This document shows, piece by piece, positions 16,184-35,111 of a DNA stretch of 64,000 nt. The position numbers were made by a program, and so were the translations under genes. The stretch's first letter is position 1. The number at the start of each line of letters is the position of its first letter. The stretch lies in IMG/VR virus record IMGVR_UViG_3300045973_000169, positions 142,639 through 206,638 of that record; one strand, given 5' to 3'. The notes below the pieces were generated by a model. The model had not been told where the DNA came from, searched no databases, and saw nothing but the letters and a program-made list of their open reading frames with translations.

Positions 16184-16186
16184 ATC

Positions 16187-16677: not shown

Positions 16678-19600
16678 TTAAACCTTACCTAATTCTTTTT
16701 TAAATTGCCAATAGTAACTTAGTACTGCATTTATGTGATCTGTATTTTTCATAAATTGAGGTCCATGTCCTGCATTGTATGCTGATACTGCTCTAGACAC
16801 ATCCCCATTTTCAGTTTGTATTAAATCAAATAAATACTTAACTCCATAGTCTATATTTGTTTTAGGATCAAATGGATCTTTACCATGGGTTCCATCCATA
16901 GAAGGATGAGCTTTCCCATTTATTTGCATTAAGCCTCTATCATTCTTGTCCTGTACCCCTATTGCTTTTGGGTTCCATCCACTCTCTCTTTGTATCAATC
17001 CATAGACAACTTCTGGCTCAAGTATATATTTCTTTGTTCCATTTAGTTTACTTAATGCTTCATCAACCATAGGCTTTAACTGGTTAAACATACTATCTTG
17101 TCTTACTATTTCTTCTGTGATCGAATATGATTTTAGTTTCATAGATCCACTAGGTGTTGATGCAAAAGCATTACCAGTAAATTGTATCCCTGGATCCAAT
17201 ATATCAGCAGCAAGTTTAACTGGTTCATAATCACTGAGAGAACTATATGCTTCATTAAATGCATCTTTAGCATTTATAACCATACCCTTCATATGCATCC
17301 ACATGTCATTATTTCTATAACCTTCAAGACCCGGCATTAACATAGAATCTTTAAACCAGATTGGCGAAATAACTACGATGTTTCCTTTTGTAGCAGCTTC
17401 TATTGCAAACATCTCAACTATAGATGGGAGTTCCATTACAACACTGAGAGCTAATAGCATTGATACATTCCTTGCTAATGGTCCACCTAATAATTTCTTT
17501 CCACCTTCAATAAGTTTCGATCCAACAGCTTTTGTACCAGCAGAATATTTACCACCAAATAAACCTTTAGGCTTCATCTTATTTAATAATACTTCATACT
17601 CTTTTTCTGTATTAACATTTATCTTAGTGTCTTTTAAAAGATCTTTCTGTGATTTTGATAAATCTTTCCAAGCTGTTTCTTTCTTCGCTAATATCTTTTC
17701 CATCGAAGCTATTACTTGCTTATCTACAATAGTCTCGGCGGCAAGTGCTGCATCTACTGCAGCAGCCTTAAGTTCTCTTGTGTAATCGGCGGTCTGTGTA
17801 GCCCATCTATTTAAGAAGTCAGGCACTTTCTTAGGCATTAAGTTAGATAGATATTCTCCTGGAGTTATCCTTCTGAATACAGTTTTTACTGCTCCAGCAA
17901 AAACATCAGAGAAAACATATCTTCCACTTTGAACGACTGAATTACCAGCGGCAACAAGTCCTCTTTTTGCTCCACTTGATCCAACAACTGCTGCTGTTTT
18001 ACCAGCATAAGCAAGTGCTGTATCTGCATAAACAGAATATTTCCATTCGACTACATTCTCTGCCCAGTTAAATTTATTAAGAGCATCTAGTGTATCAGTA
18101 GGTAAGCCATTGTATTTATTTACAAATGTCTCATTTTCTCTTGCTTGTGCAAAATGTTTATTTGCTTCAAGTAATCCATTAGCTACAAGTGAGAATCCTA
18201 ATGATGTCCAAGGACCTGTTGTTGCTCCAAGGACTAATGATGTAGCATCTATTGCTAATCCTGCAGCTCCTCGTTCATTCCAATAGTTACTTACCTTACC
18301 AATTATATATTTACGTCTTAAATCACCAGCAGTTGAGTAAGCTGTATCATTTATCTTACAAACCATATTAGGGACAATATGAGTAGTGAAACCCATTTCA
18401 GAATCAAACTTATGGATTACAGTTTCTACTTGAACCCAACCATACATCTTAGATACTTTATCACAAATATAAATCTTATCATAAGGTTCAATCTTCGAGT
18501 TTCCTCTAAGAATAAGTGTCCCGCCATATAGACGTTCTACTCCTTCCTTAAGTAATCCAAGTGCATATTGTTGAGATAGTCTTTCATCATTTGTCCAGTC
18601 AATAACTGCGAACTTCCTTCTTAAGGCATGATTAAATATATCTGCATTAGCAACATACTCTTCTGGCTTACCAGACCCATCAGACGATTTTGAAATTACA
18701 ACTGAATTCCATCCTCTTTCTGGAGTTGCTCTTACTCCATTATAAATTATATTATCCCATGATGTTGCTATATGATGTTTCTGGAAAGGAACCATTGGTA
18801 AGATTCCAGTAGATAAAGTCTCAGGATCTATATTCCCTAGTGTGTCTCTTCTAGGACTATAGTCCATAATAGCTTTTCTGTATCTATCATTGTTATTTCC
18901 AGACTCTCTTGTTGCATCTGATCTCTCAATAAATGAAGGAGCCATTGCAAGAAGTGGATCATCTGTTCTGAAATAATGGAAGTCGGGATCTCCTAAGAAC
19001 AATGTAGACCTAGAGCCATAAGGTCTTACATCTAAAGCATATCCAGGATAGATCCTTTGGATGTCTCTTAGCACATCCCAAACAGTCCTTTGGTTATTTG
19101 CTTTAAGTGTTACATTAGATCCAGAAGCACTTGCCCATATATCAAAAGCGAATATATTTGCATCTATGGGATTATGTCCATTCTCAAGAGTGTCAGCCAT
19201 ATGTCTAAATAATTGAGTTGTAGCTTTATCTGCATTAAATAAATCTCCACGAAGTCTACCATAAAGATTGCTAAATGTAGTCGAGAATCTTTCATTCCCT
19301 TTACATGACTCTCTGAATAAAGTCATTTTCCCAGCCTCAATCATCTTTCTACCATAATCACCTTCGGCTCCAAATGATGCATAGGCTAATGCTCCAACGC
19401 TTGTCCCGACTGCCGCTGCCGCTAAAGGAGATGCACCTATCATCCCAATAGCTGCTGCCCCAGCGAATGTTCCACCAGTGACTAATGCACTTGTACCCGT
19501 TCCAATAAGCCCAGTAATATTAGCTCTTGACATAATGAAGTTCATCAGGTTCTTATTTCTTCTGGAGAACTGTTCTATATGTGAACCAAACATTCTACCG

Positions 19601-22600: not shown

Positions 22601-24279
22601 ATATTTATTTCAGATGGAGCATTATGATTAACATTATAAGCATGTAATTGTTTCTCATGTTCAATCATAAAATTATATGGATGAACTGATTCTTCTAAGT
22701 CAAATGTAGGATCAAATGCAGAGTCATCATCTTTTTTAGACTTCATTCTTATTACATCTCTTACTTTAGCCATATCACCAAGAGTAGTAACTGCTTGGAT
22801 TTCTTCATGATATCTAATATACTGTATCTTTTCAGAAGAGTTATTATGGAAGTAAGGCATAGGATTAAATAGAGACATCTCAAGACTACAACCAATACAT
22901 CCTGGGTGTCCTTCTATTGTATAAAGAGTATAAGTATCCATAGTAACAGGGACACAGTATCCTGATAATGATTCATGTCCACTGCCATATTGAGTAGCAA
23001 GGAACTTATTCTCTTTGCTTAGTTTATGAAATATATCTTTAGATCTTATGATATTAATTGGTACATATTTGAACTGTTGTAAGATCCTAAATAGATTATC
23101 ATTTATTCCATGTTCGCCTTGGAATATTAAGTTAAGTTTTATAATTGTTCTGTTAGTGATAGAAGTCATTTGTGGTCTTGACTCCATACCTAATAGTGGA
23201 ACATTTTGCGATGATCTTAACTGAGATATAAGTAAATGAGTTGGAGGAATATCAAGCCATACATCACCAATCTTAACCTTGTCAGCATTATCAGGATTAC
23301 TTAAGTCATATTGTGTCTGCCCTCTCTTCTTGTTGAAGATAGGTTTTAGTTGAGATAGGTGATTATAAAGTAAGTCAGACATATTTGTTTTAGCATCTTC
23401 GAATGCTTTAACTCTTGTCTGTACTTCTTGTGTATGAACTCCAAACCCTTTTTGCCCTGCACATTCTTGTGCTCTACGGAATGCATCTTGAGTCATGGAA
23501 CTATCCCTGTCAGGGTTATTCCAGTTAACATGGTGCATAAGCACAGCACCAGTTTTAACCTGTAGAGCTTCCAAGTCAATCGCAGGGTTACCAAGGCCAA
23601 AGTCGATTTTATAACTTTGTACAGGACGTGGACCTATATCGTCATAGCCTAAATCACTAGGAATAATTTTAGGGTATCCATTAGGATATACATCATTAGT
23701 GTTTCTTAGTGCCTGAGCATTAAGTAACATTTTCTCTGTAATTCTAGCTTGTATATTAGAATAAGGATCAGACTGTCTAATGATTAGATAATCTTTATCA
23801 CCTTCATGTCCAGCTTCATAATAGTATTCATTTTCATCACCCATTAAGGCTTTACTATTCTTATAAGCTTTCCCTGTCTCAAAGGCATCGATTTTTCTTA
23901 AACGACCTTCATCAAAACGAGTTATTCTACCAGTAGAATCTTTTACACCACCAGGAGAGTCACCGTCCTTAATCCATATCATTTCTTTTACTGCCTGTCC
24001 TTGCTCATTAACAATATCTCTGTCTAATGTAATAAGAGGAATATTAAACTTATTATCATAAGTAGGAAGATAGTTATCACCATAAGCTAATACAGGATCA
24101 CTAATTCTAGGGTCACCAAATCTTTGGATAGCATCAAATTCACTTTTTTTATTATCTTTTAGATTGGCTAACTTTTTATCATAATCATCAAAGTTAAACC
24201 CAAGTTTTTCTTTATCAAAAAATGGGATATTACTTATCAGTAAAAGTTCTTCTGTAGAAAGTCCATCGCAAGCTGACAT
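16678..24279 (-). CDS. Giant baseplate hub / tail-associated lysin: N-terminal thermonuclease-like domain, hub-like core, hydrophobic segments, C-terminal SLT lytic transglycosylase (2533 aa)
   Basis: SLT: 'IQRESGWNPKA' (catalytic E2432), 'RGLMQIN', 'FDPKTNIDYGVKYL', 'AVSAYNAG'. Hub-like: 'LRQGMRICVKLGY...TVFIGTITNL'. SNase: DGD105-107, R126, D131, E134. Confidence 0.8.
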   Translation of the reverse strand: MSACDGLSTEELLLISNIPFFDKEKLGFNFDDYDKKLANLKDNKKSEFDAIQRFGDPRISDPVLAYGDNYLPTYDNKFNIPLITLDRDIVNEQGQAVKEMIWIKDGDSPGGVKDSTGRITRFDEGRLRKIDAFETGKAYKNSKALMGDENEYYYEAGHEGDKDYLIIRQSDPYSNIQARITEKMLLNAQALRNTNDVYPNGYPKIIPSDLGYDDIGPRPVQSYKIDFGLGNPAIDLEALQVKTGAVLMHHVNWNNPDRDSSMTQDAFRRAQECAGQKGFGVHTQEVQTRVKAFEDAKTNMSDLLYNHLSQLKPIFNKKRGQTQYDLSNPDNADKVKIGDVWLDIPPTHLLISQLRSSQNVPLLGMESRPQMTSITNRTIIKLNLIFQGEHGINDNLFRILQQFKYVPINIIRSKDIFHKLSKENKFLATQYGSGHESLSGYCVPVTMDTYTLYTIEGHPGCIGCSLEMSLFNPMPYFHNNSSEKIQYIRYHEEIQAVTTLGDMAKVRDVIRMKSKKDDDSAFDPTFDLEESVHPYNFMIEHEKQLHAYNVNHNAPSEINIFKIDNPFSDKHWELMQQSAGKRFTENDCIQLIAASSITENAHSVSLSYSNNFAWTPVLEHAIPTAQFIGPGETQVSVNFKTTDIEAVRQVLRSYKESITPDRFGNFENRFLVQTPILDLADANILTIQNLVVSSVDGKPHLSDVNLIFSKTIFESIARADNDPVKFDNYWGLKRITHLLDMPEYQDMAKDMEKLERKDSMLYKVRNSASVDIDGLSQRFAADLNKALDEISKTKGMQTTETPKSFYESRDSVTQNVNGQHAVDRLQWKQAKLAESISNSADGIDGAFVNNVVSNFNALQKKWEAEHPGLVYSAPGEVQIELDLTSLVVKSESDKGRLKKVLSNFNTYYMLVNGYVATFDLNGISLGELEFLKGEFLKRGFKVGGDSKQLSVSKMPADVNALTKETVTSTAVLDKVITEKMREKIKVDLQAGVLLAKPYAAHRWFNRVDNFISYNKMFSNSVGYWYSQNRLRMMGDEVSTLKTEMDFIGDYMTDTDAYKTVYIKDTWRGLQEEMIGKENSCLNIGRTLAIPSMRKDTTSFASDSRNPINDKSGNRAGLFYPILKNDGQPVTKDFALNKFSTCMFNEHHFKGDPAIVKYMKESFAGNVNSLKNPYDPTDVFDNNMGSRISSVYDDNGRSMGVLTSDGILHKPSATSMKNLHAPLSNQKVNEKQEDYAKKFLSAQICHKTISSKPGGVTGASYKDVNAPDVTPSVKPKSVTPSISNEKQWAKLEEKKILLAMHESVNDTKLWKENNAKLIALRAKYNTTGISDTLPANYIETAGEEIDESTENYLLQQVYNSEAITIGIQNAYPTYKIYIIHDNLTDYKYKALDDYWDFRLLQDLMVIRDRNNPAHILKCRVVVDPRKTTTSAMYDSRYGYKGVNQVTGQPQMITETRNQDDESKINTEEMYSFMGGRSPLRQGMRICVKLGYHSDPRYLDTVFIGTITNLSAAGMGMYEIEGRGDGRELATPSSIQNSSLSGSNFSDLISQMLRSNPSIIHFGRMFGSHIEQFSRRNKNLMNFIMSRANITGLIGTGTSALVTGGTFAGAAAIGMIGASPLAAAAVGTSVGALAYASFGAEGDYGRKMIEAGKMTLFRESCKGNERFSTTFSNLYGRLRGDLFNADKATTQLFRHMADTLENGHNPIDANIFAFDIWASASGSNVTLKANNQRTVWDVLRDIQRIYPGYALDVRPYGSRSTLFLGDPDFHYFRTDDPLLAMAPSFIERSDATRESGNNNDRYRKAIMDYSPRRDTLGNIDPETLSTGILPMVPFQKHHIATSWDNIIYNGVRATPERGWNSVVISKSSDGSGKPEEYVANADIFNHALRRKFAVIDWTNDERLSQQYALGLLKEGVERLYGGTLILRGNSKIEPYDKIYICDKVSKMYGWVQVETVIHKFDSEMGFTTHIVPNMVCKINDTAYSTAGDLRRKYIIGKVSNYWNERGAAGLAIDATSLVLGATTGPWTSLGFSLVANGLLEANKHFAQARENETFVNKYNGLPTDTLDALNKFNWAENVVEWKYSVYADTALAYAGKTAAVVGSSGAKRGLVAAGNSVVQSGRYVFSDVFAGAVKTVFRRITPGEYLSNLMPKKVPDFLNRWATQTADYTRELKAAAVDAALAAETIVDKQVIASMEKILAKKETAWKDLSKSQKDLLKDTKINVNTEKEYEVLLNKMKPKGLFGGKYSAGTKAVGSKLIEGGKKLLGGPLARNVSMLLALSVVMELPSIVEMFAIEAATKGNIVVISPIWFKDSMLMPGLEGYRNNDMWMHMKGMVINAKDAFNEAYSSLSDYEPVKLAADILDPGIQFTGNAFASTPSGSMKLKSYSITEEIVRQDSMFNQLKPMVDEALSKLNGTKKYILEPEVVYGLIQRESGWNPKAIGVQDKNDRGLMQINGKAHPSMDGTHGKDPFDPKTNIDYGVKYLFDLIQTENGDVSRAVSAYNAGHGPQFMKNTDHINAVLSYYWQFKKELGKV

Positions 24280-24282
24280 TAA

Positions 24283-27200
24283 TTAACCTCTGTATTGGTG
24301 CATATCTGATTTATAAGGATCAGTCCCATCCGAACGAACAGAGACTGTATTGTTAAGTCGTCCACCGAAAGCAGCGGAGATAGATGAAATTGAATCATTA
24401 TGGTTTTCTCGTCTGTCTGTTAATAAACCCATGTGCATATTATTCCCCATAGATGATCCCATCTGTCTTGGTGTTCCCATATATCCTCTATGTGAATCTC
24501 CAAATGATGGATTAGATACAGAAGGAAGATCATTTATATCTTCTGGAGTCCCATCCCCACCAAGTACATTTAGTGCAGTCATTGCAACTAAACCTGCTCC
24601 AAGAGCAAGTCCAACTTTCCCTGGAGTAATTTTACCCATAAGATTTCTTACTTGCTCTGCTCCATAAATTTCTCTCTTAGATATCCCTTTTACAATAGAT
24701 CCATGTAGTTCAGGATTAATAAATGACTCATGACCTAAGTGTCTCTGTAAGTTTGAGTCTCCAAGAAGACCTTTAAAGAATCCTTCTTCGCTATCTCTAT
24801 GTTGTCTTATAACTGCATCATAGCTTTCAGAAGCAGAGAAGTGACCTGTCTTCTTTAGGTCTTCTATAAAGTCGAAATAACTATGAGATGTAGTATATCC
24901 CATATTCTTAAAAGCTTCGGTTTCATTTGTGAATGTCATTCCTTTTGTCTTCTCTACATAAGCAGCAGCTCTAGTCTTAGCTAGTTCTGGAGTAAACCCT
25001 GGAAGTAACTTTAATGCATTCTCTACCTCAGTTGCTCCTTCACGCTTAAACATTGTATGTATATTAGTTAATGTTTCGAATTCTTTCTTAACGTTATTCT
25101 TTGACCCTTCACGTAAGAAAGCAGGAACTTCACCATTCCTATTCTGTACTGCATTTAATGTATTGTATAGATGTAATGCACCAACTTCACCTTGTAACTC
25201 TGCAAACCCAGTTAGAGCTTTCTCTTTAGTTAGCTCTCCCATGTTGGCAACCATGTGATCTATTTTGTTGGTTACACCAAGCATCTTCTCTACGTGCTTT
25301 GAAGATATAGACCCCTGGACAATTTCTTTAGCAGGGATATCTATTGCATGAATCATTGCATTCATCTGTTGTTCTTCAGATAGAGATGAATTTCCAATAA
25401 TCTTGCTCATCATTGCATTAGTCATCTCTTTGGTTCTTACATGCGCTGAACCAGTAGTTCGTTTAGTTAACCAAGCTGCAGTAACAGATTCTTTTTCAGA
25501 ATATGCCATAGCCTTAGTCAAATCATCTAATCTGTCTGCATGTGGGAGGAAGTAATTCTTAGATTCATTATTGAAAATAGCCTGTAATGAATTCTTCTTA
25601 TTTTCTTTTATCGCATTGATAACATCATGTGACATGCTTTGTTCTTTTAAGATTCTATCATATACATTAGATCTGTTTTGAGTATGGAATAAGAATTTAG
25701 CAAATGCAATATCACCGTCATTATCAGCATTCATTAATGTTCTTAGGCGATGTCCGAATGCTATAAACTTACCACCTTCGACATATCCTTTATCTGTAGC
25801 AAATGTGAAAGATAAAGCTTTAGAAGAAGAATAGATATTAGGGAAACGGTCTACAAATGTAGACTGTCCCGCTCTCTCTATTAATGAAGCTGCTTTATCA
25901 TGTTGTCCACTTTGGACTAACGAATGTAATAAGTCATAATCTTTAACAGATTGTTGAGCTATACTATGACCTACTTGTTTAAATTTATCTCCTGAAGCTA
26001 TATCAGCATAATGCTTTTCGAATATATTCCCTTTACCAAATCTATCTTCTAAGAAAGAACTAATTGTTTTATTATTATCCTTAGCTGTTATATATGATTT
26101 CTGTAATTCATCAGCGATAGAAGATGCATATGTTTCTTTGTCAATTACAGTAGTGTTACCAAATAGATGGTCTAGCTTAGATCCTTCTTCAATACTGCCA
26201 ATTAATTCTTTATTATTAATAAGATGAGTATCGGCAAATACTTTATCTAGTGAAGCTCCCTCAACTTGGAAAGCGCCTCTTCTTAAGTATCCTTCTTTAG
26301 ATGCCATATTACCAGTCGCTCTAATATCAATTAGCTTCTGATAGTTACTACTGCTAATCACTCCACCATTATTCTTTGCATCAACTAATATCTGTGTTTC
26401 TAATCTAACATCTCTAGAAACAGCTAACCTTTCTTCGTCATCTAAGTATTGTGACTTCTGATAAAAATCTCCAGATCCGAAATAAGCTAATCTCCCATCT
26501 TCAGTTGCAACACCAAATCCTTTGGCATTAACATCTGGGTTAAGAAATGATTTAGTCATTAAATAAGGATCATCTATATTGCCGCCTTTGATTATCTTAC
26601 CATCGGCAAGCATCTCTTCAAGCCCTTCTTTATTCAGGACTTTAACTCCAGTCTTCTCCATCTGTCCAGCTAACTTAGGATCTTTCATGAAGTTCATATA
26701 CATCTGACCTTCAGATAGAATCTTCCTTGAATCAGTTAAACTACTTCCTGCAAGCTCTTCCATTACTTTACTTGGAAGCAGATATGGCATATCATTGACA
26801 CCCATTCTATAAACATTATGTCCTATCCCTTGAGTATATAAACTCTCTTGAGGAAATATAGTTGACATGATATGGAACTGATTTATATTCTTAGTTTTAT
26901 CACCAAGGCTCTGTAAATGATCTGTCATTAAATCAGCAGCATCATTATAAGAGATATCTTGTGAGCCGCCTCTCATATGTCCTAGTAATCTAGTCATTAA
27001 GTTTATCTGTTCTTTCATCGGGCCAGCCCCTTGGTCGAACTGTAATCTCCCTTGTCGTGCTAGCTGAGTAAGATTCCCAGTAAATCCTCCTACATATTTA
27101 GATAAACTTTTTGTAAGGTTCTCATTTAATACAACATCTTTTTCTGCAGCATAAGCGTGTCCAGCTACCATTGACTGTAATGTAGTTAACATACTCCCTG

Positions 27201-29262
27201 CGCCTTTACCTGCAATTATACCATCAATCCCATCTTTACCTATAGATGAAGGAAATACTTTCTTGAAGAAATCGAGAGACATATCGAAACTAACATTCTT
27301 GCCATACAGAGCAGCTGTTTCTTGTGGCATTAATTGAGCAGCACTTCTTAGATCATGATAAGTTCCTACTTTAGTAAGGGCCTCAACACTTTGACCATAG
27401 AATGTTTTCTCAATTGTTCCTTCTCCGAATCCTCTTAATGTTCTTGCAATATCTTCTTTAGTCTGGATAACCTTAGTATTTGTTGTAACTAAACCATTAG
27501 AATGAGACATAGCTCTATCATATGAAGCAGCAGTATCTATCTGATTATTGGCAGTACCTAACCCAACTACAGTCCCAGGTCTTAGTTCGATCCTTTCAAC
27601 TTGGCTTAATGTTTTTGTATCATTATATAGGTCAAATAGAGTCTTATCACTGTGTGATTCTCCACCGATTATATATGTAGGATTCATTAATTTAGTCATA
27701 GCCTGTTTTTCACTTGGTAATCCACCCCAAGTATATCCAGTCTTTGCTTTCATCTCTATGGCTCTAGAAACCCTCATATTATCTTTTAAACCAGGGGCGA
27801 ATTGGATAACCTCTTCTGTATGTGGATTTATTACCCCTAGCATTGTTGCATGCCCTTGGTCATAAACCTGTCCATAAGCTAAAGGATTAGTCCCTTGAGC
27901 TAAATGACTCCAAACTAAAGGTAGGTTCTTATCAATATTTTCACCAAAACGTCCATGGAATTTAAAGTCTTTCATAGATTTGAGTGAGTCGATACCATTC
28001 CCTTTAGTCATGGTTGGGAAGAATGTAGATGTCCACATAGCCCCTTGACTCTGAGAAACATTATATCCAATGAATTCATTTATCTGTTGTTGTATTGGAG
28101 AATGGATACCTCTAAATTTATTATTAGCATTACCTCTTGCTACTTCATTCATTCCAGCTACTGCATTAATGGCTTCTGGTTCTATTGAGTGTAGACTATT
28201 TAATGAAACATTAGACTCCATCGCTCCCCTAAGTCCAGCATTTTCCATTTCATGTAAACCATAGATATCATTCTTTACTGTACGCCCTAACCTTTGGATC
28301 TTCGCCGGTGAGTTCCCTTCTGCCCACAATAGATGACTGCTAAGGTTTTTAAATAGTTGTTTGATGCCATGCATCTCATGGAAATCTTTAACTATTCTTT
28401 CAGCATTAGTCTTGCTCTCAATCATCTTTACATGAGCAGCAGCATCTTTCCCTTTAGTCCCTTTTCTTATAATATCATCATAATGGAGAACATCTCTTAC
28501 ATCTCTGGCATTCCCAGAGTTAGCTGTAATTAATGCTTTCTGATTATTAGAAATCATATCTAAGACATATTCATTATAAGACATGAATTCAGATCCAACT
28601 ACATTCTTACCTTCAAGTGTTGGTCTCCTAAAGTAAGGAGCCACATAATGTGCTCCTTCTTTATTTCTTACAATCCAAGCTCCAGTCTCTTCGTCGAATT
28701 TTGCTAAAGGAACTTCTACGCTATGATTACCTATCTTTACACTTAAAGATGTACTAGCTCCAACAGCATCTTCTCTCGTAGCTGTAATCCCTAGTTTCTT
28801 TAAGTTTTCTAATACCTTAGACTGGACATCTACATTATCAATAGAATAGACACCTTTGTTTAGGTTAACTCCATGGACAGTAGATCCATTAGAGAATCTT
28901 GCTATTTCTTCAGCGGTTATATCAATTCCAGTCTCTTTGAGTCCAACACTGTTTATGCTATTAATCTTCTCAATCATAGAAGTGTCTCTATGAGCATAAG
29001 TAGCTTTCTTCATCTCCATCCCACGCTTTAAGCCTGTGTCTATAGAGTCTGCTATATTAGATATACGTCTCTGTAATGGGGTTTGACTTGGGTTAGTTAA
29101 TGGCATAACCTTATCTAATATATTAGTTAGTTGCCCACCTAACCAACCTTCTGGCTCTCTATTAACTTTATATAAAGTATATGCTGAAGCACCTAGTATC
29201 CCAGTCATCCCTATCTTCGGGACGATTGAATCATTGTATTGTTCATAAGGTCTATTAGACAT
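24283..29262 (-). CDS. Putative single-chain two-barrel (DPBB) RNA polymerase, probably virion-packaged (1659 aa)
   Basis: NADNDGD (aa 1178-1184, nt 25711-25731) is preceded by R1139-F-P, KEGYLR (aa 989-994) and a beta-like K631-VGTY-H636-DL-R639. The motifs occur in beta-then-beta' order. Confidence 0.75.
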   Translation of the reverse strand: MSNRPYEQYNDSIVPKIGMTGILGASAYTLYKVNREPEGWLGGQLTNILDKVMPLTNPSQTPLQRRISNIADSIDTGLKRGMEMKKATYAHRDTSMIEKINSINSVGLKETGIDITAEEIARFSNGSTVHGVNLNKGVYSIDNVDVQSKVLENLKKLGITATREDAVGASTSLSVKIGNHSVEVPLAKFDEETGAWIVRNKEGAHYVAPYFRRPTLEGKNVVGSEFMSYNEYVLDMISNNQKALITANSGNARDVRDVLHYDDIIRKGTKGKDAAAHVKMIESKTNAERIVKDFHEMHGIKQLFKNLSSHLLWAEGNSPAKIQRLGRTVKNDIYGLHEMENAGLRGAMESNVSLNSLHSIEPEAINAVAGMNEVARGNANNKFRGIHSPIQQQINEFIGYNVSQSQGAMWTSTFFPTMTKGNGIDSLKSMKDFKFHGRFGENIDKNLPLVWSHLAQGTNPLAYGQVYDQGHATMLGVINPHTEEVIQFAPGLKDNMRVSRAIEMKAKTGYTWGGLPSEKQAMTKLMNPTYIIGGESHSDKTLFDLYNDTKTLSQVERIELRPGTVVGLGTANNQIDTAASYDRAMSHSNGLVTTNTKVIQTKEDIARTLRGFGEGTIEKTFYGQSVEALTKVGTYHDLRSAAQLMPQETAALYGKNVSFDMSLDFFKKVFPSSIGKDGIDGIIAGKGAGSMLTTLQSMVAGHAYAAEKDVVLNENLTKSLSKYVGGFTGNLTQLARQGRLQFDQGAGPMKEQINLMTRLLGHMRGGSQDISYNDAADLMTDHLQSLGDKTKNINQFHIMSTIFPQESLYTQGIGHNVYRMGVNDMPYLLPSKVMEELAGSSLTDSRKILSEGQMYMNFMKDPKLAGQMEKTGVKVLNKEGLEEMLADGKIIKGGNIDDPYLMTKSFLNPDVNAKGFGVATEDGRLAYFGSGDFYQKSQYLDDEERLAVSRDVRLETQILVDAKNNGGVISSSNYQKLIDIRATGNMASKEGYLRRGAFQVEGASLDKVFADTHLINNKELIGSIEEGSKLDHLFGNTTVIDKETYASSIADELQKSYITAKDNNKTISSFLEDRFGKGNIFEKHYADIASGDKFKQVGHSIAQQSVKDYDLLHSLVQSGQHDKAASLIERAGQSTFVDRFPNIYSSSKALSFTFATDKGYVEGGKFIAFGHRLRTLMNADNDGDIAFAKFLFHTQNRSNVYDRILKEQSMSHDVINAIKENKKNSLQAIFNNESKNYFLPHADRLDDLTKAMAYSEKESVTAAWLTKRTTGSAHVRTKEMTNAMMSKIIGNSSLSEEQQMNAMIHAIDIPAKEIVQGSISSKHVEKMLGVTNKIDHMVANMGELTKEKALTGFAELQGEVGALHLYNTLNAVQNRNGEVPAFLREGSKNNVKKEFETLTNIHTMFKREGATEVENALKLLPGFTPELAKTRAAAYVEKTKGMTFTNETEAFKNMGYTTSHSYFDFIEDLKKTGHFSASESYDAVIRQHRDSEEGFFKGLLGDSNLQRHLGHESFINPELHGSIVKGISKREIYGAEQVRNLMGKITPGKVGLALGAGLVAMTALNVLGGDGTPEDINDLPSVSNPSFGDSHRGYMGTPRQMGSSMGNNMHMGLLTDRRENHNDSISSISAAFGGRLNNTVSVRSDGTDPYKSDMHQYRG

Positions 29263-29264
29263 TG

Positions 29265-32200
29265 TTAATACCCATAACTAAACTGTGAGTGGATTAGATC
29301 ACCATATTGAGACTGTGATCTTTGTAAGTAATCTGCATGTCCATTTGTTTCGATATCTATACTTGTCATAGTATTCGGTGACATGGTTGGGAACATCTGT
29401 ATATTTGAAGCTCTATCATCTTGTATTATATATGAAACTATTCTGTTAATAGTTGAATTTGTTGTTGATCCTGCTGACTTTAATTGGTGTGATGCTAAAT
29501 TAGCACCATGATCAAATACTGCTTCTCTCAATTTATTATCAAAGAAACCATAATCTTGTATATTCTCTCCACCTTCTTTAAGTGCTAATAACTCTACATT
29601 TTCAATATTAACATCAGGGGAATAGCCTATCCAATCTTCTTTAGGCATATCATGAGACTTCATATATTCTCTTACATACCTAGCTCTTATCCAATCAGCT
29701 TTATTAGCATTTCCTCCAGTTTCATTCATATACATCTTACTCTCTTGACCTGACATTCCCCAACCTTCGGTTTCCTGTAGGTTCATATAAGCTTGTTGTA
29801 CATTTATATCATCTGAAGATTCAGCTAACTTCTTGCTCCATATTGCATTGTATAATCTTCTAGCACCTCTAGGGATATACTTCATGATCTTCCCGCGTTT
29901 CTTTGGGTCAGGCTCATTAGCAAATCTAGAGTAATAAGCTCTTTCATTTTCAGGCAAAGCAGCTAATTCATCTCTTGTATTATCATCAGTTGGGTCAGCC
30001 CCTATCATTGTAGAACGCCACATATTATGATAGTAAGTTGCATCTTCTTCATTGCCAGTTTTAGATGCTTGTACTGCTAACATCTTATATTTGACATATT
30101 TAAGAATATCCCAATACTCTTGGTTTTGTCTTCTTTCAACAGTGAATCCTGGTAGGTGATCTACACCAAACCATTGGTGCATAAAAGAAGATATAGCAGG
30201 AGCCAATAGATGTTGGATAGGGTGTGACCATAACTTAACTTCACGGTTAAATACTTGGTTAGTTAAGTAATTATCTAAATAGTCTTTTTTAGGGATTAAC
30301 TTATTAGCCCAGAAGGTCTGGTCATTAGAAATAGTCCCCCAGTATTTAGCCATTGCTCTCCCAGCATATCCAACTTCATCCTGTTGCATATTGAATTCTG
30401 AAAGATTTCCAGTATTAGTTCTTGCTGCTCCTGCTTCTATTAGATCTGAACTAAGATCTCCTATTAATGCTTCAGTCCCAGATTCAGAATTATTCATCTG
30501 ATCTGCAGATGGAGCTTGAAAAGAAATACTCTGACCAATGCCAATACGTGATGCTATAATTTGTGATGTCCTTGCTCTTGCCTCTTCTGCTGCTCTTGCT
30601 AATTCTGATGTTGAACTAAACTTTTCTTTTAATAGTAAATTAGCTCTTATATCCGCTTCTGAGGTTGAAACACCAGCGATCCTATAGCGAGTATCATCAC
30701 CTTCAAGAGTAAAGCTTCCTGACTCATCTACGGAGCTTACAGTGCCATTAACTGTATCAGTATTTAGTCTATAGTCGTACTCTGATTTAGATGTATAAAG
30801 TTTATCTTTGAGTTGTCTTACTTGGTCTAATGTTTCATAGAATCTTTGCTCATCGCCTAAAGATAATTGGTCTTGTAATGTTTGATGCATTACTTTATGA
30901 GATTGATTTCTAAACTCTTGTGTAAATGGAGCTATGGACTGTAATATCTCTAGCTTTTCAGGATCAGGATATTGTTCTAGTTCTTTCCCTTTTAATTCTG
31001 GGTAAAGATTCTCCCAACCTTTTCTTGTAGAATATAACCATCCTAAAGGAGTATTATCAAATGTAGTCCCATGAGTTACATCATTAGTATATCTTTTAAA
31101 TGCATCTTTCTTAGTGCTTTCTTGAGGGATCCAAGATACACCATTAAGTTCATTTGGTAAGTCATTGATTTTCCAATCCTTCATAGGATATGGGAATATA
31201 CGTCTTAAGAATTCTCCACCTACTCCAGAAATATCTCCTAGCTTCCATCCCCACATCTGTTGAGCTGGGTTATAGAACTCTCCTGCATTTTCTTTATAAG
31301 GAACAAACTGATCTGTAGATTCACCAGTTATATATTGTTTCGCAGTCTCATATGCGAATCCAGTGAAACCAATTAAGTCATGGTATTGTCTAGACCATCT
31401 ATCCATAAGATCTTTATTAGATCCTTCTGACTGCATCCCAATAGCTCTAGCTAATTCCATATTAGATGCACCAGCGCCCCTCATCCCAATTGTAGTAGGA
31501 GTATAAGGTTGAGGTTGTGTCCCTTGACTAGTTAGTTCATGATATACTCTAGTTGGTTTAATTAAACGTCCTATTGTTGCTGCTATAGGTTGACCAATTA
31601 AAGGGATGTTTGCCCCAAGTGGAGCTGACTCATATACTGGCTGATCTAACTTATGATAATTCTCTAAGATGTATGGTTTATATAATCCAAATGTTGCATT
31701 ATGTAAAGCTCTCTCCCAATAGTTAGGATATACAACTCCTCTATTCTCATAGTCAGATTCAATTACACTAAACATATGCTTTCTAAATTGGATAGGAGTT
31801 CCACCCTCATAAGGAGAAGAAGACAATAACCAACCTCTATACTTACGAACTGCTACTTCCTTATCACCAGCATACTCAGCTTTTCTTTCTTGATATGTTT
31901 TATTAGAACCTAAAACCCCAGGGAGAAATGGTAACATTGGTACCATCATAGCTGCGAAAATAGCCTTCTTAGGATTTCTTAGTGCCCAACCTGCATATCT
32001 TTCAAAGTGAGTTTTAGTTAAAGCACCAGCATAAGCTTCTGTTCTTAGAGCATTTTTTATGAAACTATTCTTACCGAACCTAGTCCCAACATTTCTTAGA
32101 TATTGCTTTATACCAACTGGGCCTTTATTGTAAAGGTATTCTCCAATTTTAAAGAATGAAGTTGCTGTTAGTGCAGGAGCTAATATGCCTAACCTAGTAG

Positions 32201-35111
32201 ATCCTGGAGCCACTTTTTCTTGCTTCTTTGTCAGTCTTGTGAATCCAGTTATATCTGATATCTTACTATAAAGTAATGTAGCTCCTTCGAAAGCTTTGAT
32301 AGGCCCCATAGTTAAAGGTCCACGACCAGTAGGACTCATTGTTATTGCACCTAGTAAATGGTCAGTAAGTCTGAAAGCTTCCCATGCAGCCATTACAGGC
32401 AGTGCACGTTTAAGCCCAAACTTAACTCCATACTCTAAGAAGCCCATATTATGAGTATAAGTTGCTAATCCTAAATGAGGTCTATTGATAACTCCAAGAG
32501 CTTTACCCGCTAATCCTTTGATAAGACTATTTGATGACTTTAATTTAGATGCAACCTTATCAAGTTTATTGCTATCAATCCCAAAGAATCCAAGTTCAAA
32601 AGGAGATTCCATAAACCTATTCCATCTATCAAGCATGAACGTTCTAGTAGGAACACCTATCTCTCTATATCTATTTTTTATATTCTGATATGTATGTCCT
32701 GGAAGAAGTATCTGATCTACTTGAGCCAAGGTTTTTGTATTAGCTGAACCTTTAGGCATCCAGTCACTAAATATATTAGCGCTCTCTCCTACACCTTTGG
32801 GTCCTAACTCAAGATTAAATTGGGTTTTCTTATACATACTCCAGAGCCATTTCCACTCTGGGTTATTTTTAATAGATGCAGGTATCTCTTGTTTCTTCAT
32901 CCATTCAGCACTAGAAGGCCAAACTGCTCTTCCTGATTTAATTTGTTGATGTTGCATTTCCCAATAAGTAGTTGGATTTGTTATATGATTTTCACCATAT
33001 CCTTTCCCGAATCTATTTATTGAGTTAACTCCTGACATGTTAGCATGTCTTGTATTCCTTAGCTTAAATGTAAATGGCAGAGTTAGTTGTTCAGTTTTTT
33101 GTAATACTCCACCTTCAAGTGTGTCTTGAGCATAAACAATCATTGCTCCATTATCTGCTGTAGCAAATCTTATTTCTTTAGAAACAATCTTCTTGGCACT
33201 TGAACTTATTTGGTCTTTCGGTGTAAGCCAAGACTCAAGTTTATTATAATCCTGTTCTGGTATTAGTCTTTTCGAGTTCTCTAATATATCAGTAAAGTCA
33301 ACTCCATGGACATAATCTCTTGTCCCATCTATCCCAATAGATTTGCCATCTCTGATTGTTTTGAAGACCTTATCATATTTTCTAATCTTCCCTTCAATAG
33401 CGGCTCCTTTTTTATCACCACGGAACCAATCTATAGTACCACCTACCTGTAAGACTCTAGTGATATTATGAGAACCTTCGATTGTCTTAAGTCCTCTAAA
33501 CATAGTATCAGTGATATTCTTTCTTGAGAAATCAAATGTTGCTTTATTGTTTAAAAGTCTTGGAGACATGATCTTACTATAAGCTCCAACTCCATATAAA
33601 AATGCACCAACCCCAGTTACTCCTTTAGCAATCGTAGCAACCTGAACAAATGAGTTATGTTTATCTTCAAAGAATGTACTGTAATTAGGAGCATGTGGGA
33701 GCCCAAGATTGTTAATCTTCATCTTATCAGAGAAAGGACTTAATGAATCGTCCCCTCTTAATCCATAGGTAGCTAACAGTCCTAGCCCTACTATGGTACC
33801 CATTGCACCCCATCTTAACTTATTAGCCCCTTTAAAGGCTTCAGTCATCTGACCTGCCATTTTAGAACCTTCAAACATAGATGGATATTTTGAGTAAGAT
33901 TCTAGTATTGGCTTTAATTGGTGAGTTAGATCTTCTATTATTGGGCTAAGTTTATTTTCTGATTGTAATAATTTAGATAAGTTGCCATGAACATCGCCTT
34001 TAATTATCTGGTCAACAGTTATTCCTGCCTTATTTAACTGGCTAAGAATAGCTTTCTCTATTTGTTTCTCAGTACTTACATCTAGTCCTGCAGCATGGCC
34101 TTGGACTAAATCTTTTCCAAAGTGTTTAGATACAATAGCAGCAGCCTTCTCCGCACTATATCCACCAGCATACTGGAACTCTTCAAAATTTAAAGGTACA
34201 CGTCCAGGTCTCCCTGTCGCTGCAGCAGCAACTGGATTATATCCAATCCTAAACATATTACCAAGCTCAGGATTCTCTTTCCCAAGCTGGTATAAGAATG
34301 CTTTGTATGCTCTCTCAACCTCATCTGTTTGGATTATCCCTTGCTGATATGCAGTATAAAGAGCTTTAGCTTCATCAGCAGCTCCCATCTTAACTAGCTC
34401 TGACATATATAAGTTAATATCGAAATAAGGATTCCATGCTCCTAATCTAACTGGAGCTTCCTTAGTTCCCATCTTAAGCATATTAACTACATTCTTCTTT
34501 AAGAATCCTTGGAACTGTTCATATGTAAAGTCACCAGCATACTCGACGCCTTCTTTCTTAAAGATGCCTTCTAGTGCTCCAGCTTTACTCTTTATTAATT
34601 TACCATCTTTCACACTAAAGTCTTTAGATTTTAATCCTAAGTCTAAGTTTCCTTTAGCAATAAATATATGCCCACCATTCTCAGTAGGGAGTTTAAATAG
34701 AGCATCCATTTGAGATACTTGGCTTGGCAGTATTCTCTTCTTATACCAATCTAATTTCCCACCCTGTAACTTAGACCAAGATGCACCAAATAAACTTTCT
34801 AGATCTCGCTCTGAATGTTTTGGAATTAGATAAGATTCTACCTGTCCGAACCCTTTAAGATGTCTTACATACTTAGAGTCTGGATTAACAAAGTCTGGGA
34901 GTTTATGTCTATTATTAAAATCAATCCCATAATGTTTAATAGTATTAGTCTGACCATCATGAATAGCAAACTGAGTTACATCAACGTGACCGAAGTGTAA
35001 GAATGCATCAGTAGGATTTAATACAGTTGTACGACCAAGCTTATCATAAGCCTTAGTTAAACCAGTATTTAATCCTATTGTTTCAAAGTCTACTATTAAT
35101 CTTCTAGACAT
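29265..35111 (-). CDS. Tape-measure-like / ejection protein with N-terminal DEDDh 3'-5' exonuclease and a degenerate thermonuclease domain (1948 aa)
   Basis: ExoI VD8FE10TIG, ExoII WNPYFD231, ExoIII H339AAGLD344. Several Gly/Ala hydrophobic segments. It directly follows the tail chaperones, the usual tape-measure position. Confidence 0.7.
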   Translation of the reverse strand: MSRRLIVDFETIGLNTGLTKAYDKLGRTTVLNPTDAFLHFGHVDVTQFAIHDGQTNTIKHYGIDFNNRHKLPDFVNPDSKYVRHLKGFGQVESYLIPKHSERDLESLFGASWSKLQGGKLDWYKKRILPSQVSQMDALFKLPTENGGHIFIAKGNLDLGLKSKDFSVKDGKLIKSKAGALEGIFKKEGVEYAGDFTYEQFQGFLKKNVVNMLKMGTKEAPVRLGAWNPYFDINLYMSELVKMGAADEAKALYTAYQQGIIQTDEVERAYKAFLYQLGKENPELGNMFRIGYNPVAAAATGRPGRVPLNFEEFQYAGGYSAEKAAAIVSKHFGKDLVQGHAAGLDVSTEKQIEKAILSQLNKAGITVDQIIKGDVHGNLSKLLQSENKLSPIIEDLTHQLKPILESYSKYPSMFEGSKMAGQMTEAFKGANKLRWGAMGTIVGLGLLATYGLRGDDSLSPFSDKMKINNLGLPHAPNYSTFFEDKHNSFVQVATIAKGVTGVGAFLYGVGAYSKIMSPRLLNNKATFDFSRKNITDTMFRGLKTIEGSHNITRVLQVGGTIDWFRGDKKGAAIEGKIRKYDKVFKTIRDGKSIGIDGTRDYVHGVDFTDILENSKRLIPEQDYNKLESWLTPKDQISSSAKKIVSKEIRFATADNGAMIVYAQDTLEGGVLQKTEQLTLPFTFKLRNTRHANMSGVNSINRFGKGYGENHITNPTTYWEMQHQQIKSGRAVWPSSAEWMKKQEIPASIKNNPEWKWLWSMYKKTQFNLELGPKGVGESANIFSDWMPKGSANTKTLAQVDQILLPGHTYQNIKNRYREIGVPTRTFMLDRWNRFMESPFELGFFGIDSNKLDKVASKLKSSNSLIKGLAGKALGVINRPHLGLATYTHNMGFLEYGVKFGLKRALPVMAAWEAFRLTDHLLGAITMSPTGRGPLTMGPIKAFEGATLLYSKISDITGFTRLTKKQEKVAPGSTRLGILAPALTATSFFKIGEYLYNKGPVGIKQYLRNVGTRFGKNSFIKNALRTEAYAGALTKTHFERYAGWALRNPKKAIFAAMMVPMLPFLPGVLGSNKTYQERKAEYAGDKEVAVRKYRGWLLSSSPYEGGTPIQFRKHMFSVIESDYENRGVVYPNYWERALHNATFGLYKPYILENYHKLDQPVYESAPLGANIPLIGQPIAATIGRLIKPTRVYHELTSQGTQPQPYTPTTIGMRGAGASNMELARAIGMQSEGSNKDLMDRWSRQYHDLIGFTGFAYETAKQYITGESTDQFVPYKENAGEFYNPAQQMWGWKLGDISGVGGEFLRRIFPYPMKDWKINDLPNELNGVSWIPQESTKKDAFKRYTNDVTHGTTFDNTPLGWLYSTRKGWENLYPELKGKELEQYPDPEKLEILQSIAPFTQEFRNQSHKVMHQTLQDQLSLGDEQRFYETLDQVRQLKDKLYTSKSEYDYRLNTDTVNGTVSSVDESGSFTLEGDDTRYRIAGVSTSEADIRANLLLKEKFSSTSELARAAEEARARTSQIIASRIGIGQSISFQAPSADQMNNSESGTEALIGDLSSDLIEAGAARTNTGNLSEFNMQQDEVGYAGRAMAKYWGTISNDQTFWANKLIPKKDYLDNYLTNQVFNREVKLWSHPIQHLLAPAISSFMHQWFGVDHLPGFTVERRQNQEYWDILKYVKYKMLAVQASKTGNEEDATYYHNMWRSTMIGADPTDDNTRDELAALPENERAYYSRFANEPDPKKRGKIMKYIPRGARRLYNAIWSKKLAESSDDINVQQAYMNLQETEGWGMSGQESKMYMNETGGNANKADWIRARYVREYMKSHDMPKEDWIGYSPDVNIENVELLALKEGGENIQDYGFFDNKLREAVFDHGANLASHQLKSAGSTTNSTINRIVSYIIQDDRASNIQMFPTMSPNTMTSIDIETNGHADYLQRSQSQYGDLIHSQFSYGY

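Follow-up and report, generated by a model that had tools for sequence, protein, structure and literature searches.

A predicted two-barrel RNA polymerase in the tail module of an uncultured giant phage, encoded between genes for an exonuclease-bearing and a nuclease-bearing protein

What does a contractile-tailed phage encode when the position normally occupied by the tail tape-measure gene holds, instead of a recognisable tape measure, one of three giant and almost contiguous genes with enzyme motifs? This question is raised by a stretch of 64,000 nucleotides (the window) covering positions 142,639 to 206,638 of the IMG/VR record IMGVR_UViG_3300045973_000169, a 206.6 kb contig related to Bacillus phage 0305phi8-36 and Acinetobacter phage ME3. 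An initial annotation, made from the sequence alone, described here an 18.4 kb tail cassette (16678-35111) delivering an RNA polymerase flanked by two nucleases and a wall hydrolase. The three co-oriented genes, of 1948, 1659 and 2533 codons, are separated by 2 and 3 nt, with junctions reading TAA-ca-ATG and TAA-tta-ATG, and the module is arranged as follows, all on the minus strand.

36465..36869 (-), 134-aa tail-assembly chaperone candidate, first of a pair
35111..35683 (-), 190-aa protein, second gene of the chaperone slot, its stop overlapping the start of gene 1
29265..35111 (-), gene 1 (1948 aa), virion-protein family of 0305phi8-36 gp145 and ME3 gp035, with an added N-terminal exonuclease
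24283..29262 (-), gene 2 (1659 aa), single-chain two-barrel RNA polymerase homolog in the tape-measure slot
16678..24279 (-), gene 3 (2533 aa), enlarged baseplate hub protein of the 0305phi8-36 gp147 and ME3 gp037 family
14172..16675 (-), downstream baseplate genes (162, 133 and 132 aa, and a 397-aa Baseplate_J protein)

The three giant genes and a low G+C content first suggested a crAss-like phage, a reading that was rejected since sheath, tube and tube-paralog genes lie upstream, a Baseplate_J protein lies downstream, and the homologs belong to 0305phi8-36 and ME3. The 134-aa protein resembles by blastp the 'putative tail chaperonin' ME3 gp033 (5e-7) and 0305phi8-36 gp144 (6e-7), and occupies the same position in relatives. 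The 190-aa protein had no family hit and is assigned from position only, a gene of 185-198 aa being conserved directly upstream of gene 1 in the related loci that extend that far. Downstream, the 397-aa protein matches Pfam Baseplate_J (4.3e-14), phrog_6 (baseplate wedge) was identified, and the 133-aa protein resembles ME3 gp039, the same order being seen in relatives. Conservation of the three-gene order among related phages was one of the checks named in the initial annotation, and this order is kept at all eight distinct related loci that keep both flanks. Gly/Ala-rich hydrophobic segments, as had been claimed, occur in all three proteins.

The identity of gene 2 is the central issue, and its parts can be summarised as follows.

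24838..28005 (-), residues about 420-1475, confidently folded globular polymerase core in the predicted model
27193..27594 (-), residues 557-690, candidate beta-like barrel (DPBB-B) with invariant K631, R639 and K686
25693..25866 (-), residues 1133-1190, beta'-like barrel (DPBB-A), with R1139-x-P1141 followed by the metal-binding D1180-N-D-G-D1184 (codons 25711..25725)
24286..24621 (-), residues 1548-1659, hydrophobic helix (1548-1570) and strongly conserved C-terminal tail (GDGTPxDPNDLPSVNNPSF ... VSVRxDGxxPYKxDM)

Direct searches for genes 1 and 2 were uninformative: no Pfam or PHROG model recognises gene 2 or the exonuclease of gene 1, phmmer against PDB gave only noise, tblastn of gene 2 against phage genomes found nothing, and a word-indexed protein search and a scan of IMG/VR returned only the query itself. 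Gene 2 nevertheless belongs to an unannotated family of 41 representative clusters. Scans of metagenome and genome collections with the family alignment gave no confirmed locus; the full 26-sequence alignment was too divergent for pattern scanning. The motif NADNDGD at residues 1178-1184, noticed in the initial annotation, is real. By our own estimate, from an aspartate frequency of about 5.5%, one DxDxD is expected by chance about once in every four proteins of this length, and the significance therefore comes from conservation and fold rather than from the motif alone. All 26 aligned members, which share 17-40% identity, keep RxP...NADxDGD; D1180, D1182, G1183, D1184, R1139, P1141, K631 and R639 are invariant, so that a lack of conservation of the catalytic motif in homologues, which had been specified in advance as a ground for refutation, was not observed. 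R1139-F-P1141 lies 38 residues before D1180, and all 26 sequences satisfy the [RK]xPx{20,100}DxDxD filter used in Supplementary Data 4 of PMC10770324.

Structural evidence points in the same direction. The AlphaFold2 model of gene 2 has a mean pLDDT of 77.8 and a pTM of 0.77, and places the DxDGD loop between strands. The best 50 of 834 Foldseek matches in PDB are all RNA polymerase beta' chains or an RpoA-RpoC model, from AR9, phiKZ and bacterial enzymes, with a best E-value of 1.4e-4 and probabilities of up to 1.00; these E-values are modest and the TM-scores are low, because only the core superposes. The two best PDB matches of the family profile are beta' subunits, with E-values of about 0.08, and the profile aligns the barrel to the NADFDGD region of Staphylococcus aureus beta' and of the phiKZ non-virion polymerase. 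Among the best 50 of 375 matches in BFVD there are poxvirus polymerase subunits, including the beta-like 132-kDa subunit, a metagenomic 'minor tail protein' and two ME3 proteins. For the second barrel, which should supply two basic residues to the active site, K631 and R639 are invariant, 8 residues apart, on strands of a beta-rich upstream region; this assignment is suggestive only, resting on invariant basic residues and secondary structure, and as no coordinates were available to check that these residues face the Asp triad, the question was left undecided. No other ORF of the window has a credible DxDxD context, a search for a second polymerase that did not extend to the remaining 142 kb of the contig, where the presence of a second, non-virion polymerase is therefore unknown.

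It could be argued that gene 2 is first of all the tape-measure or tail-lumen structural protein, and that its polymerase fold is an exapted or inactive remnant. The gene sits in the slot assigned to the tape measure in 0305phi8-36, one gene after the chaperone pair, and it ends with a hydrophobic helix and a conserved C-terminal tail, like tape-measure proteins; for this tail a role as a hub- or membrane-contact element is only inferred. Moreover, the positional counterpart 0305phi8-36 gp146 has no DxDxD, and no degenerate polymerase motif was found in it, so the slot does not always hold a polymerase. However, the invariance of the metal-binding triad, the glycine within it, the upstream RxP and two basic residues in the other barrel is a pattern expected only if catalysis is under selection, and phage P23-45 shows that a tape measure and an active polymerase can be the same chain (PMC10770324). 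We thus regard a remnant as unlikely, although RNA synthesis was not assayed. Whether gene 2 also determines tail length was left unsettled by what was observed: no long helical tape or metallopeptidase was found, and the tail length is unknown.

A different possibility is that the polymerase is active but that its main task is not early gene expression, the enzyme acting as a motor that pulls the genome into the cell, or as a primase or RNA-dependent polymerase. The two-barrel superfamily includes RNA-dependent polymerases (QDE-1) and the DNA polymerase PolD (PMC10770324; PMC7824862), Hardies et al. raised a role in injection for the 0305phi8-36 polymerase (PMC2147016), and the P23-45 authors propose transcription coupled to DNA translocation. 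Nothing in the sequence separates these activities. In P23-45 the virion enzyme does transcribe pre-early genes, and we hold this alternative to be doubtful.

Gene 1 can be divided into three regions.

33897..35111 (-), residues 1-405, DEDDh (DnaQ-like) 3'-5' exonuclease domain
32502..33896 (-), residues 406-870, poorly conserved, low-confidence helical and hydrophobic linker
29268..32492 (-), residues 874-1948, conserved C-terminal module shared with gp145 and gp035, with a hydrophobic segment at residues 1049-1069 (31905..31967)

The DEDDh motifs named in the initial annotation are real: D8-x-E10, W226-N-P-x-x-D231 and H339-x4-D344. D8, E10, H339 and D344 are conserved in 42 of 42 relatives, N227 in 41 of 42, and position 231 is D in 35 and E in 7, so that the exonuclease residues also passed the conservation test that had been announced for the homologues. 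The AlphaFold2 model is confident for residues 1-405 (pLDDT mostly 75-93). The fold also points to an exonuclease, the consistent Foldseek hits being dominated by the N-terminal/exonuclease part of the RB69 and T4 family-B DNA polymerases, but these are weak (E 0.04-1, probability 0.4-0.98) and there was no Pfam or PHROG hit, so that the structural comparison does not by itself decide for an RNase-H-like exonuclease fold. The 'degenerate SNase' that had been proposed for the same protein was not found: there is no SNase motif, no Pfam hit and no conserved catalytic pattern, and the linker where it would have to lie has a pLDDT mostly below 50 and is not matched in 0305phi8-36 gp145 or ME3 gp035, although a distant relative of gene 1 does carry PF00565. 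The description of gene 1 as tape-measure-like was likewise not established. Its C-terminal module matches ME3 gp035 (blastp 1.5e-19) and 0305phi8-36 gp145 (1.8e-13), with dozens of invariant residues across 42 sequences. Profile searches of the gene 1 and gene 3 families against PDB gave nothing useful.

Gene 3 carries the remaining enzymes.

23410..23997 (-), residues about 95-290, staphylococcal-nuclease-like (SNase) domain
18334..20235 (-), residues about 1349-1982, hub core, interrupted by a Gly/Ala-rich hydrophobic stretch at 1598-1637 (19369..19488)
17392..17493 (-), residues 2263-2296, hydrophobic segment ahead of the wall hydrolase
16759..17037 (-), residues 2415-2507, SLT lytic transglycosylase

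The SNase motif DGDS...RLRKIDAFE...GPR is present, and D105, D107, R126, D131, E134 and R218 are invariant in 7 of 7 relatives; D107, R126, D131, E134 and R218 are the equivalents of D21, R35, D40, E43 and R87 of SNase. The match to the family model is less clear-cut and allows no ruling either way: the window's own copy gives no Pfam hit, whereas the aligned ortholog passes the gathering score for PF00565 (24.7 bits against 21, E 3.3e-5), and hhalign to the canonical SNase region of ME3 gp037 gives E 1.2e-4 at a probability of 54%. The hub region is homologous to ME3 gp037 (blastp 1.5e-15 and 3e-8) and 0305phi8-36 gp147 (1e-7), matches phrog_20474 and phrog_8809, and gives tblastn hits annotated as baseplate hub. 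A T4 gp27 domain was found in gp147 by Hardies et al. (PMC2147016), but since the profile search against PDB found nothing, the gp27-type assignment of gene 3 itself rests on this homology and is not settled. The SLT domain is a firm Pfam hit (PF01464, E 3.5e-20, 72.2 bits against a cutoff of 21.3), with QRES, GLMQI and AYNAG readable in the translation; relatives carry a glucosaminidase, M23 or NlpC/P60 domain instead.

These swappable wall hydrolases suggest another reading, in which the nuclease domains are envelope- or matrix-clearing tools on the outside of the particle, the SNase for example digesting extracellular DNA in biofilm or capsule, rather than an intracellular nucleic-acid-processing set working with the polymerase. 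The SNase shares the chain with interchangeable wall-degrading domains, and in ME3 gp037 it lies at a different place in the chain, which is typical of shuffled accessory modules. SNase enzymes are typically secreted and Ca2+-dependent, which argues against a cytoplasmic role for that domain. ME3 gp035 and 0305phi8-36 gp145 lack the exonuclease, which is therefore not needed for the polymerase slot. On the other hand, in this clade the exonuclease (42/42) and the SNase (7/7) are both fixed with intact catalytic residues, and the exonuclease sits on a protein with membrane-type segments encoded directly before the polymerase. This reading is possible, but we give it only tentative weight.

Where the proteins reside in the particle is a further matter. 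It may be that all three are packaged in the head as ejection proteins, as in phiKZ-like or crAss-like phages, and are merely encoded in the tail gene block: a folded polymerase core of about 1000 residues is hard to fit in a tail tube, and the virion polymerases of phiKZ-like phages and N4 are carried in the head (PMC7824862, PMC7598289). This is unlikely in our view, since gene 3 is a baseplate hub homolog and must be at the tail tip, the genes follow the chaperone pair and are 2-3 nt apart, and the C-terminus of gene 2 is conserved like a hub-contacting tape-measure end. Virion presence was not examined for this phage or its clade, nor was transcription of pre-early genes; the evidence is indirect, the positional homologs 0305phi8-36 gp145 and gp146 having been identified by mass spectrometry according to their annotation.

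Taken together, the observation behind the initial annotation is confirmed, with the exception of the SNase assigned to gene 1. Its interpretation is supported only in part: the enzyme identities, their conservation and the gene order held, and the precedents it cited, the P23-45 tape-measure-fused virion polymerase and the crAss-like phage polymerase gp66, are real (PMC10770324), but a membrane-spanning complex ejected through the tail, host-independent early transcription and nuclease action on nucleic acid at entry were not demonstrated. Nor is the arrangement unique to this phage, being a conserved module of a whole clade. We favour, with reasonable confidence, a conserved tail-tip and tail-lumen module of a clade of 0305phi8-36/ME3-like jumbo myoviruses. 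The analysis itself establishes a single-chain two-barrel RNA polymerase homolog with an intact catalytic site in the slot that relatives assign to the tape measure, a conserved virion-protein family member with an intact DEDDh 3'-5' exonuclease set added at its N-terminus, and a baseplate hub family protein with an N-terminal SNase and a swappable C-terminal peptidoglycan hydrolase, here SLT. What follows from this is inference: the proteins would be built into the tail, genes 1 and 2 in or at the tube lumen and gene 3 at the tip; on sheath contraction the SLT would cut the wall; genes 1 and 2 would leave through the tube ahead of the DNA and anchor in the membrane by their hydrophobic segments, as tape-measure proteins do; and the polymerase would transcribe the first genes to enter, and may help pull the genome in, without the host polymerase, following the model for P23-45. 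The exonuclease would act on nucleic-acid 3' ends at the entry site, and the SNase may act outside the cytoplasm. Tape-measure ejection and channel formation have precedents in P23-45 (PMC10770324) and T4 (bioRxiv 10.64898/2026.03.06.709160). How a core of about 1000 residues, predicted to be a large globular body with about 450 residues between the two barrels, would sit in or pass a tail tube is unexplained, since the P23-45 enzyme is flat and lacks a clamp, which its authors link to passage through the tail.

A bolder reading, which the data do not rule out but which we consider unlikely, is that of a coordinated 'entry enzyme set' ejected through a contractile tail, in which the exonuclease, and possibly the SNase, would resect or nick the leading end of the incoming genome. 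This would give the co-ejected, membrane-anchored polymerase a single-stranded or open template, so that transcription could start without any host factor and help pull in the 200 kb genome. In that case, tail-lumen polymerases would be a general and overlooked feature of the 0305phi8-36/ME3 supergroup of jumbo myoviruses, and nuclease-assisted transcription initiation at genome entry would be a new mechanism.

Tail-delivered polymerases are so far documented for a single siphovirus group, P23-45, and the present family adds a second, unrelated-looking one in contractile-tailed jumbo phages, represented by dozens of environmental clusters. No description of a polymerase in the tail module of these myoviruses, or of the three-enzyme arrangement, was found in the literature searched, in which most subscription journals were not represented. 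By motif and structure match the family also reaches cultured phages, as ME3 gp036 and Bacillus phage KLEB27-3 gp034, currently annotated as 'hypothetical' or 'structural' proteins, carry the polymerase motif in the same slot. The finding raises the physical question of how a large folded polymerase travels in or through a tail tube, links nucleases to the entry apparatus, would explain how these phages could start infection independently of the host polymerase, and shows for annotation purposes that the 'tape measure' slot of this supergroup can hide an enzyme.

Among known systems, 0305phi8-36 gp145/gp146/gp147 and ME3 gp035/gp036/gp037 show the same layout of three giant genes after the tail chaperones, with detectable homologs of genes 1 and 3 and a hub that carries wall hydrolases. 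In 0305phi8-36, however, gp146 is annotated as the tape measure, and a separate YonO-like polymerase, orf99, is present (PMC2147016, PMC7824862). ME3 gp036 has RxP...DHDQD and a structural match but no sequence similarity to gene 2, and in ME3 the SNase sits mid-chain. By hhalign, the gene 2 family gave no significant match to ME3 gp036 or 0305phi8-36 gp146, and the comparison with KLEB27-3 gp034 aligned only the DxDxD barrel.

The virion polymerase gp66 of the crAss-like phage phi14:2, and the YonO/QDE-1-type single-chain enzymes, share a single polypeptide carrying both barrels, of which the beta-like one is here only a candidate, embedded in a very large virion protein, with host-independent early transcription proposed. 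The crAss-like phages are podoviruses whose polymerase is thought to be carried in the head; only low-probability matches to crAss-like phage proteins were seen, the best structural matches here being beta' subunits of multisubunit enzymes. Tape-measure and hub proteins with lytic domains, such as T4 gp5/gp27 and the mycobacteriophage and T5-type tape measures with peptidoglycan hydrolase motifs, also carry the wall-cutting enzyme on tail-tip or tail-lumen proteins, with hydrophobic segments thought to form the channel, but those carry only wall hydrolases, whereas here three nucleic-acid enzymes are added.

The closest precedent is the tape-measure-fused virion polymerase gp96 of Thermus phage P23-45 (PMC10770324), likewise a two-barrel polymerase with a DxDGD-type site encoded in the tail module at the tape-measure position, with almost no sequence similarity to known polymerases and found through the DxDxD motif, with the barrel order B then A (here resting on a candidate B barrel), hydrophobic segments on the same chain and a proposed role in tail-delivered pre-early transcription. 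Homology to gp96 was not detected: it is not among the best 50 of 834 matches in PDB or the best 50 of 375 in BFVD, a limited test in which the sole P23-45 match was a weak one to a 616-aa protein (probability 0.41). P23-45 is a siphovirus with a 5002-residue chain in which the polymerase is the N-terminal part, and exonuclease- and SNase-bearing neighbours are not described for it; in the present phage the tail is contractile, the polymerase gene has 1659 codons, the core lies in the middle to C-terminal part, and the connector between the barrels is long (about 450 residues) rather than the short one of the flat, clampless gp96.

The contig IMGVR_UViG_3300045973_000169 is 206,638 bp long and only its last 64 kb were read, so that a second, non-virion polymerase and candidate early promoters were not sought on the remainder, nor on the long related contigs. 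G+C content is about 34%, no tRNA genes occur in the window, and every gene of interest lies on the minus strand. Together with the low G+C content, the only hint of a host is that one close relative of gene 1 (P0047) is deposited from a metagenome-assembled genome labelled Tenuifilaceae (Bacteroidota). The features of this stretch are as follows:

55622..58096, minus strand: 824-aa protein containing fibronectin-III
52602..55631, minus strand: 1009-aa protein with a subtilase (Peptidase_S8) domain and a TTG start
38304..40291 and 36907..38301, minus strand: tube protein (210 aa) and its two larger paralogs (421 and 464 aa)
35698..36423, minus strand: free-standing HNH homing endonuclease
29265..35111, minus strand: gene 1, 1948 codons
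24283..29262, minus strand: gene 2, 1659 codons
16678..24279, minus strand: gene 3, 2533 codons
16759..17037, minus strand: wall-hydrolase (SLT) module at the end of gene 3

The three giant ORFs are separated by 2 and 3 nt, the junctions reading TAA-ca-ATG and TAA-tta-ATG, and their context is that of a contractile tail. An 836-aa protein is sheath-like, and the tube protein and its two paralogs, which share its tube-like segment, resemble gp140, gp141 and gp142 of Bacillus phage 0305phi8-36; PHROG labels this family 'major head protein', following a mislabelled GenBank product whose own note says 'tail tube'. A 134-aa protein resembling the 'tail chaperonins' ME3 gp033 and 0305phi8-36 gp144 and a 190-aa gene precede the three giants, which are followed by small baseplate genes, a Baseplate_J protein and a tail-spike-like protein. 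The HNH homing endonuclease (phrog_559, E 2.9e-61) sits between the 134-aa and 190-aa genes, which are adjacent in six related loci (L004, L005, L009, L011, L013 and L014), and it therefore looks like a recent mobile insertion specific to this phage. The subtilase protein overlaps the end of the fibronectin-III-containing protein just downstream of the capsid-protein gene, and could be a decoration or maturation protein.

Searches with gene 1 and gene 3 by tblastn find Bacillus phage 0305phi8-36, Acinetobacter phage vB_AbaM_ME3 and Bacillus phage vB_BauM_KLEB27-3. The host of KLEB27-3 is Bacillus australimaris sKR4M-27 and the host strain of ME3 is A. baumannii DSM 30007. Both 0305phi8-36 (gp145, gp146, gp147) and ME3 (gp035, gp036, gp037) have three giant genes in the same place. 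According to the GenBank notes, gp145 and gp146 were found in virions by mass spectrometry; gp146 is called the tape measure on the basis of tail length, and gp147 is a 'hyperplastic' T4 gp27-type hub with wall-degrading domains (PMC2147016). Gene 1 matches gp145 and gp035 over residues 874-1906 and gene 3 matches gp147 and gp037 over residues about 1349-1982, while gene 2 matches neither middle protein by BLAST.

The identification of gene 2 as a two-barrel RNA polymerase is well supported. An exhaustive phmmer search found 41 representative clusters, mostly of 1700-1900 residues, and in an alignment of 26 full-length members, sharing 17-40% identity with the query, the columns R1139, P1141, D1180, D1182, G1183, D1184, K631, R639, K686, Q1316 and K1322 are invariant, the consensus reading RxPxIY..S ... 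NADxDGD. All 26 pass the [RK]xPx{20,100}DxDxD filter used for polymerase detection in PMC10770324. The two best PDB matches of the family profile are weak (E about 0.08); they are the S. aureus beta' subunit and the phiKZ non-virion polymerase, both aligned on the R-P...NADFDGD barrel. An AlphaFold2 model of residues 401-1600 is confident (mean pLDDT 77.8, pTM 0.77), showing a globular core up to about residue 1475 and a low-confidence C-terminus. The 50 PDB matches listed by Foldseek are all RNA polymerase beta' chains or an RpoA-RpoC model, the best being the AR9 non-virion polymerase at E 1.4e-4. Basic residues come first and the Asp triad second, which is the B-then-A order described for P23-45, QDE-1 and gp66. 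The beta-type barrel is, however, only tentatively assigned; the model was not superposed on 6VR4 (phi14:2 gp66, crAss-like), 2J7N (QDE-1) or the gp96 structure to see whether K631 and R639 face the Asp triad and whether a clamp is present. At the C-terminus, a hydrophobic helix at residues 1548-1570 is followed by a strongly conserved tail.

A Foldseek search of BFVD with the same model returns an unnamed protein (6e-12), a metagenomic siphovirus 'minor tail protein' (1e-9), a Microcystis phage protein, two ME3 proteins, one of which is an 802-residue second half whose length fits gp036, and poxvirus polymerase subunits, including the beta-like 132-kDa one. From the hit A0A172Q0S6 (ME3, 798 aa), ME3 appears to have a second polymerase-like protein, a possible non-virion enzyme, and a Microcystis myovirus protein (A0A075BUT7_2, Microcystis phage MaMV-DC) also resembles the gene 2 model; tail-linked or duplicated two-barrel polymerases may be more widespread than annotated. 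In the same slot of cultured phages, ME3 gp036 contains R1174-E-P ... D1217-H-D-Q-D, and KLEB27-3 gp034, annotated 'structural protein', contains R1893-Y-P-T ... K-A-D-Y-D-G-D, a stretch that hhalign aligns with the gene 2 family barrel at E 1.2e-4. No paper describing a polymerase in this slot of these phages was found in the literature searched. No such motif is present in 0305phi8-36 gp146, and that phage carries a separate YonO/RdRP-like polymerase, orf99 (PMC2147016, PMC7824862); a phylogeny of the gene 2 family with YonO-like and phage beta/beta' sequences was not built.

In gene 1, the first 405 residues fold confidently, whereas the next 470 or so do not. The DEDDh motifs are kept across 42 full-length relatives at 30-63% identity, with D8 and E10 present in 42/42, position 231 being D in 35 and E in 7, and H339 and D344 present in 42/42. 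Foldseek gives weak but consistent matches to the N-terminal/exonuclease part of RB69 and T4 family-B DNA polymerases, which leave the exonuclease fold itself undecided, and Pfam returns no hit. This N-terminal half is lacking in gp145 and gp035. The C-terminal 1075 residues are a well-conserved family of unknown function with a hydrophobic segment at residues 1049-1069. The initial annotation had proposed a 'degenerate SNase' in this protein, but none was found in a motif search of gene 1. Among relatives of gene 1 (P0063, P0068, P0087, P0093, P0126-P0134), several carry intein or Hint domains (PF14528, PF14890, PF07591) or a Vsr-like endonuclease insert (PF04480/PF18741), and one shorter relative (P0132) carries a Pfam SNase domain; inteins usually target conserved sites of essential proteins.

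Gene 3 carries the SNase pattern at residues about 95-290, where D105, D107, R126, D131, E134 and R218 are invariant in seven relatives. The window's own copy is too divergent for Pfam, although the aligned ortholog in the related locus L011 passes the Pfam SNase threshold and hhalign to the canonical SNase region of ME3 gp037 gives E 1.2e-4; taken alone, the family-model comparison does not settle the assignment. In the ME3 hub protein a canonical SNase (DGDT...RVAGLDTPE) lies in the middle of the chain (L003, the ME3 locus, 26989..27516; gp037 residues about 1083-1258), followed further along by a peptidase-like region, and a nuclease on the hub therefore recurs at different positions in this supergroup. 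The hub core of gene 3 (about 1349-1982) is interrupted by a Gly/Ala-rich hydrophobic stretch, and a second hydrophobic segment precedes a firm SLT domain. Relatives replace SLT by a glucosaminidase, while the ME3 and 0305phi8-36 hub proteins carry M23 or NlpC/P60 domains instead; when the module of the window is compared with the gene 3 C-termini of L004 and L005, ME3 gp037 and 0305phi8-36 gp147, SLT, glucosaminidase, M23, NlpC/P60 and CHAP all occur. The hydrolase is therefore a swappable module, as Hardies et al. described, and the swapping may track host envelope type.

Conservation of the three-gene order across related phages had been put forward in advance as a way of testing the proposal, as had that of the catalytic residues, which are retained in the alignments described. 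Ten loci for members of the gene 2 family were recovered with DNA (L004-L009, L011-L014), plus two contigs known only from their gene lists. Eight distinct places keep both flanks, namely L004, L005, L009, L011, L013, L014 and the two DNA-less contigs, L006 and L012 being second copies of L005 and L011. All eight show the same order, that is, about 134 aa, about 190 aa, gene 1, gene 2 and gene 3. The shorter contigs L007 and L008 show large flanking ORFs cut by the contig ends. The six places with DNA continue into small baseplate genes and Baseplate_J, and one of the two DNA-less contigs continues into small baseplate genes.

The observation of the initial annotation is thus confirmed, with the single exception of the SNase proposed in gene 1. 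Its interpretation, in which the tail ejects a membrane-spanning complex that opens the wall, starts host-independent early transcription and acts on nucleic acid at entry, is partly supported. What the analysis itself establishes are the domain identities, with the beta-type barrel tentative and the exonuclease fold undecided, the intact catalytic residues, the conserved order, the tail-module position, and the homology of two of the three proteins to proteins of known virions. The remainder is inferred by analogy with P23-45 (PMC10770324) and with T4 tape-measure channel formation (bioRxiv 10.64898/2026.03.06.709160). In this view the proteins would be tail-tip and tail-lumen components, the SLT of the hub would open the wall after contraction, genes 1 and 2 would leave ahead of the DNA and insert by their hydrophobic segments, and the polymerase would transcribe the entering genome end and may also pull the DNA in. 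The substrate of the exonuclease was not identified, the SNase may well act outside the cytoplasm, and the main physical difficulty is the size and globular shape of the predicted polymerase core; the whole delivery model is plausible and is held with reasonable confidence, but it is untested. A tail-associated virion polymerase is already a known idea, and what is new here is its occurrence in a different phage morphotype and protein family, with an undescribed pairing with two nucleases.
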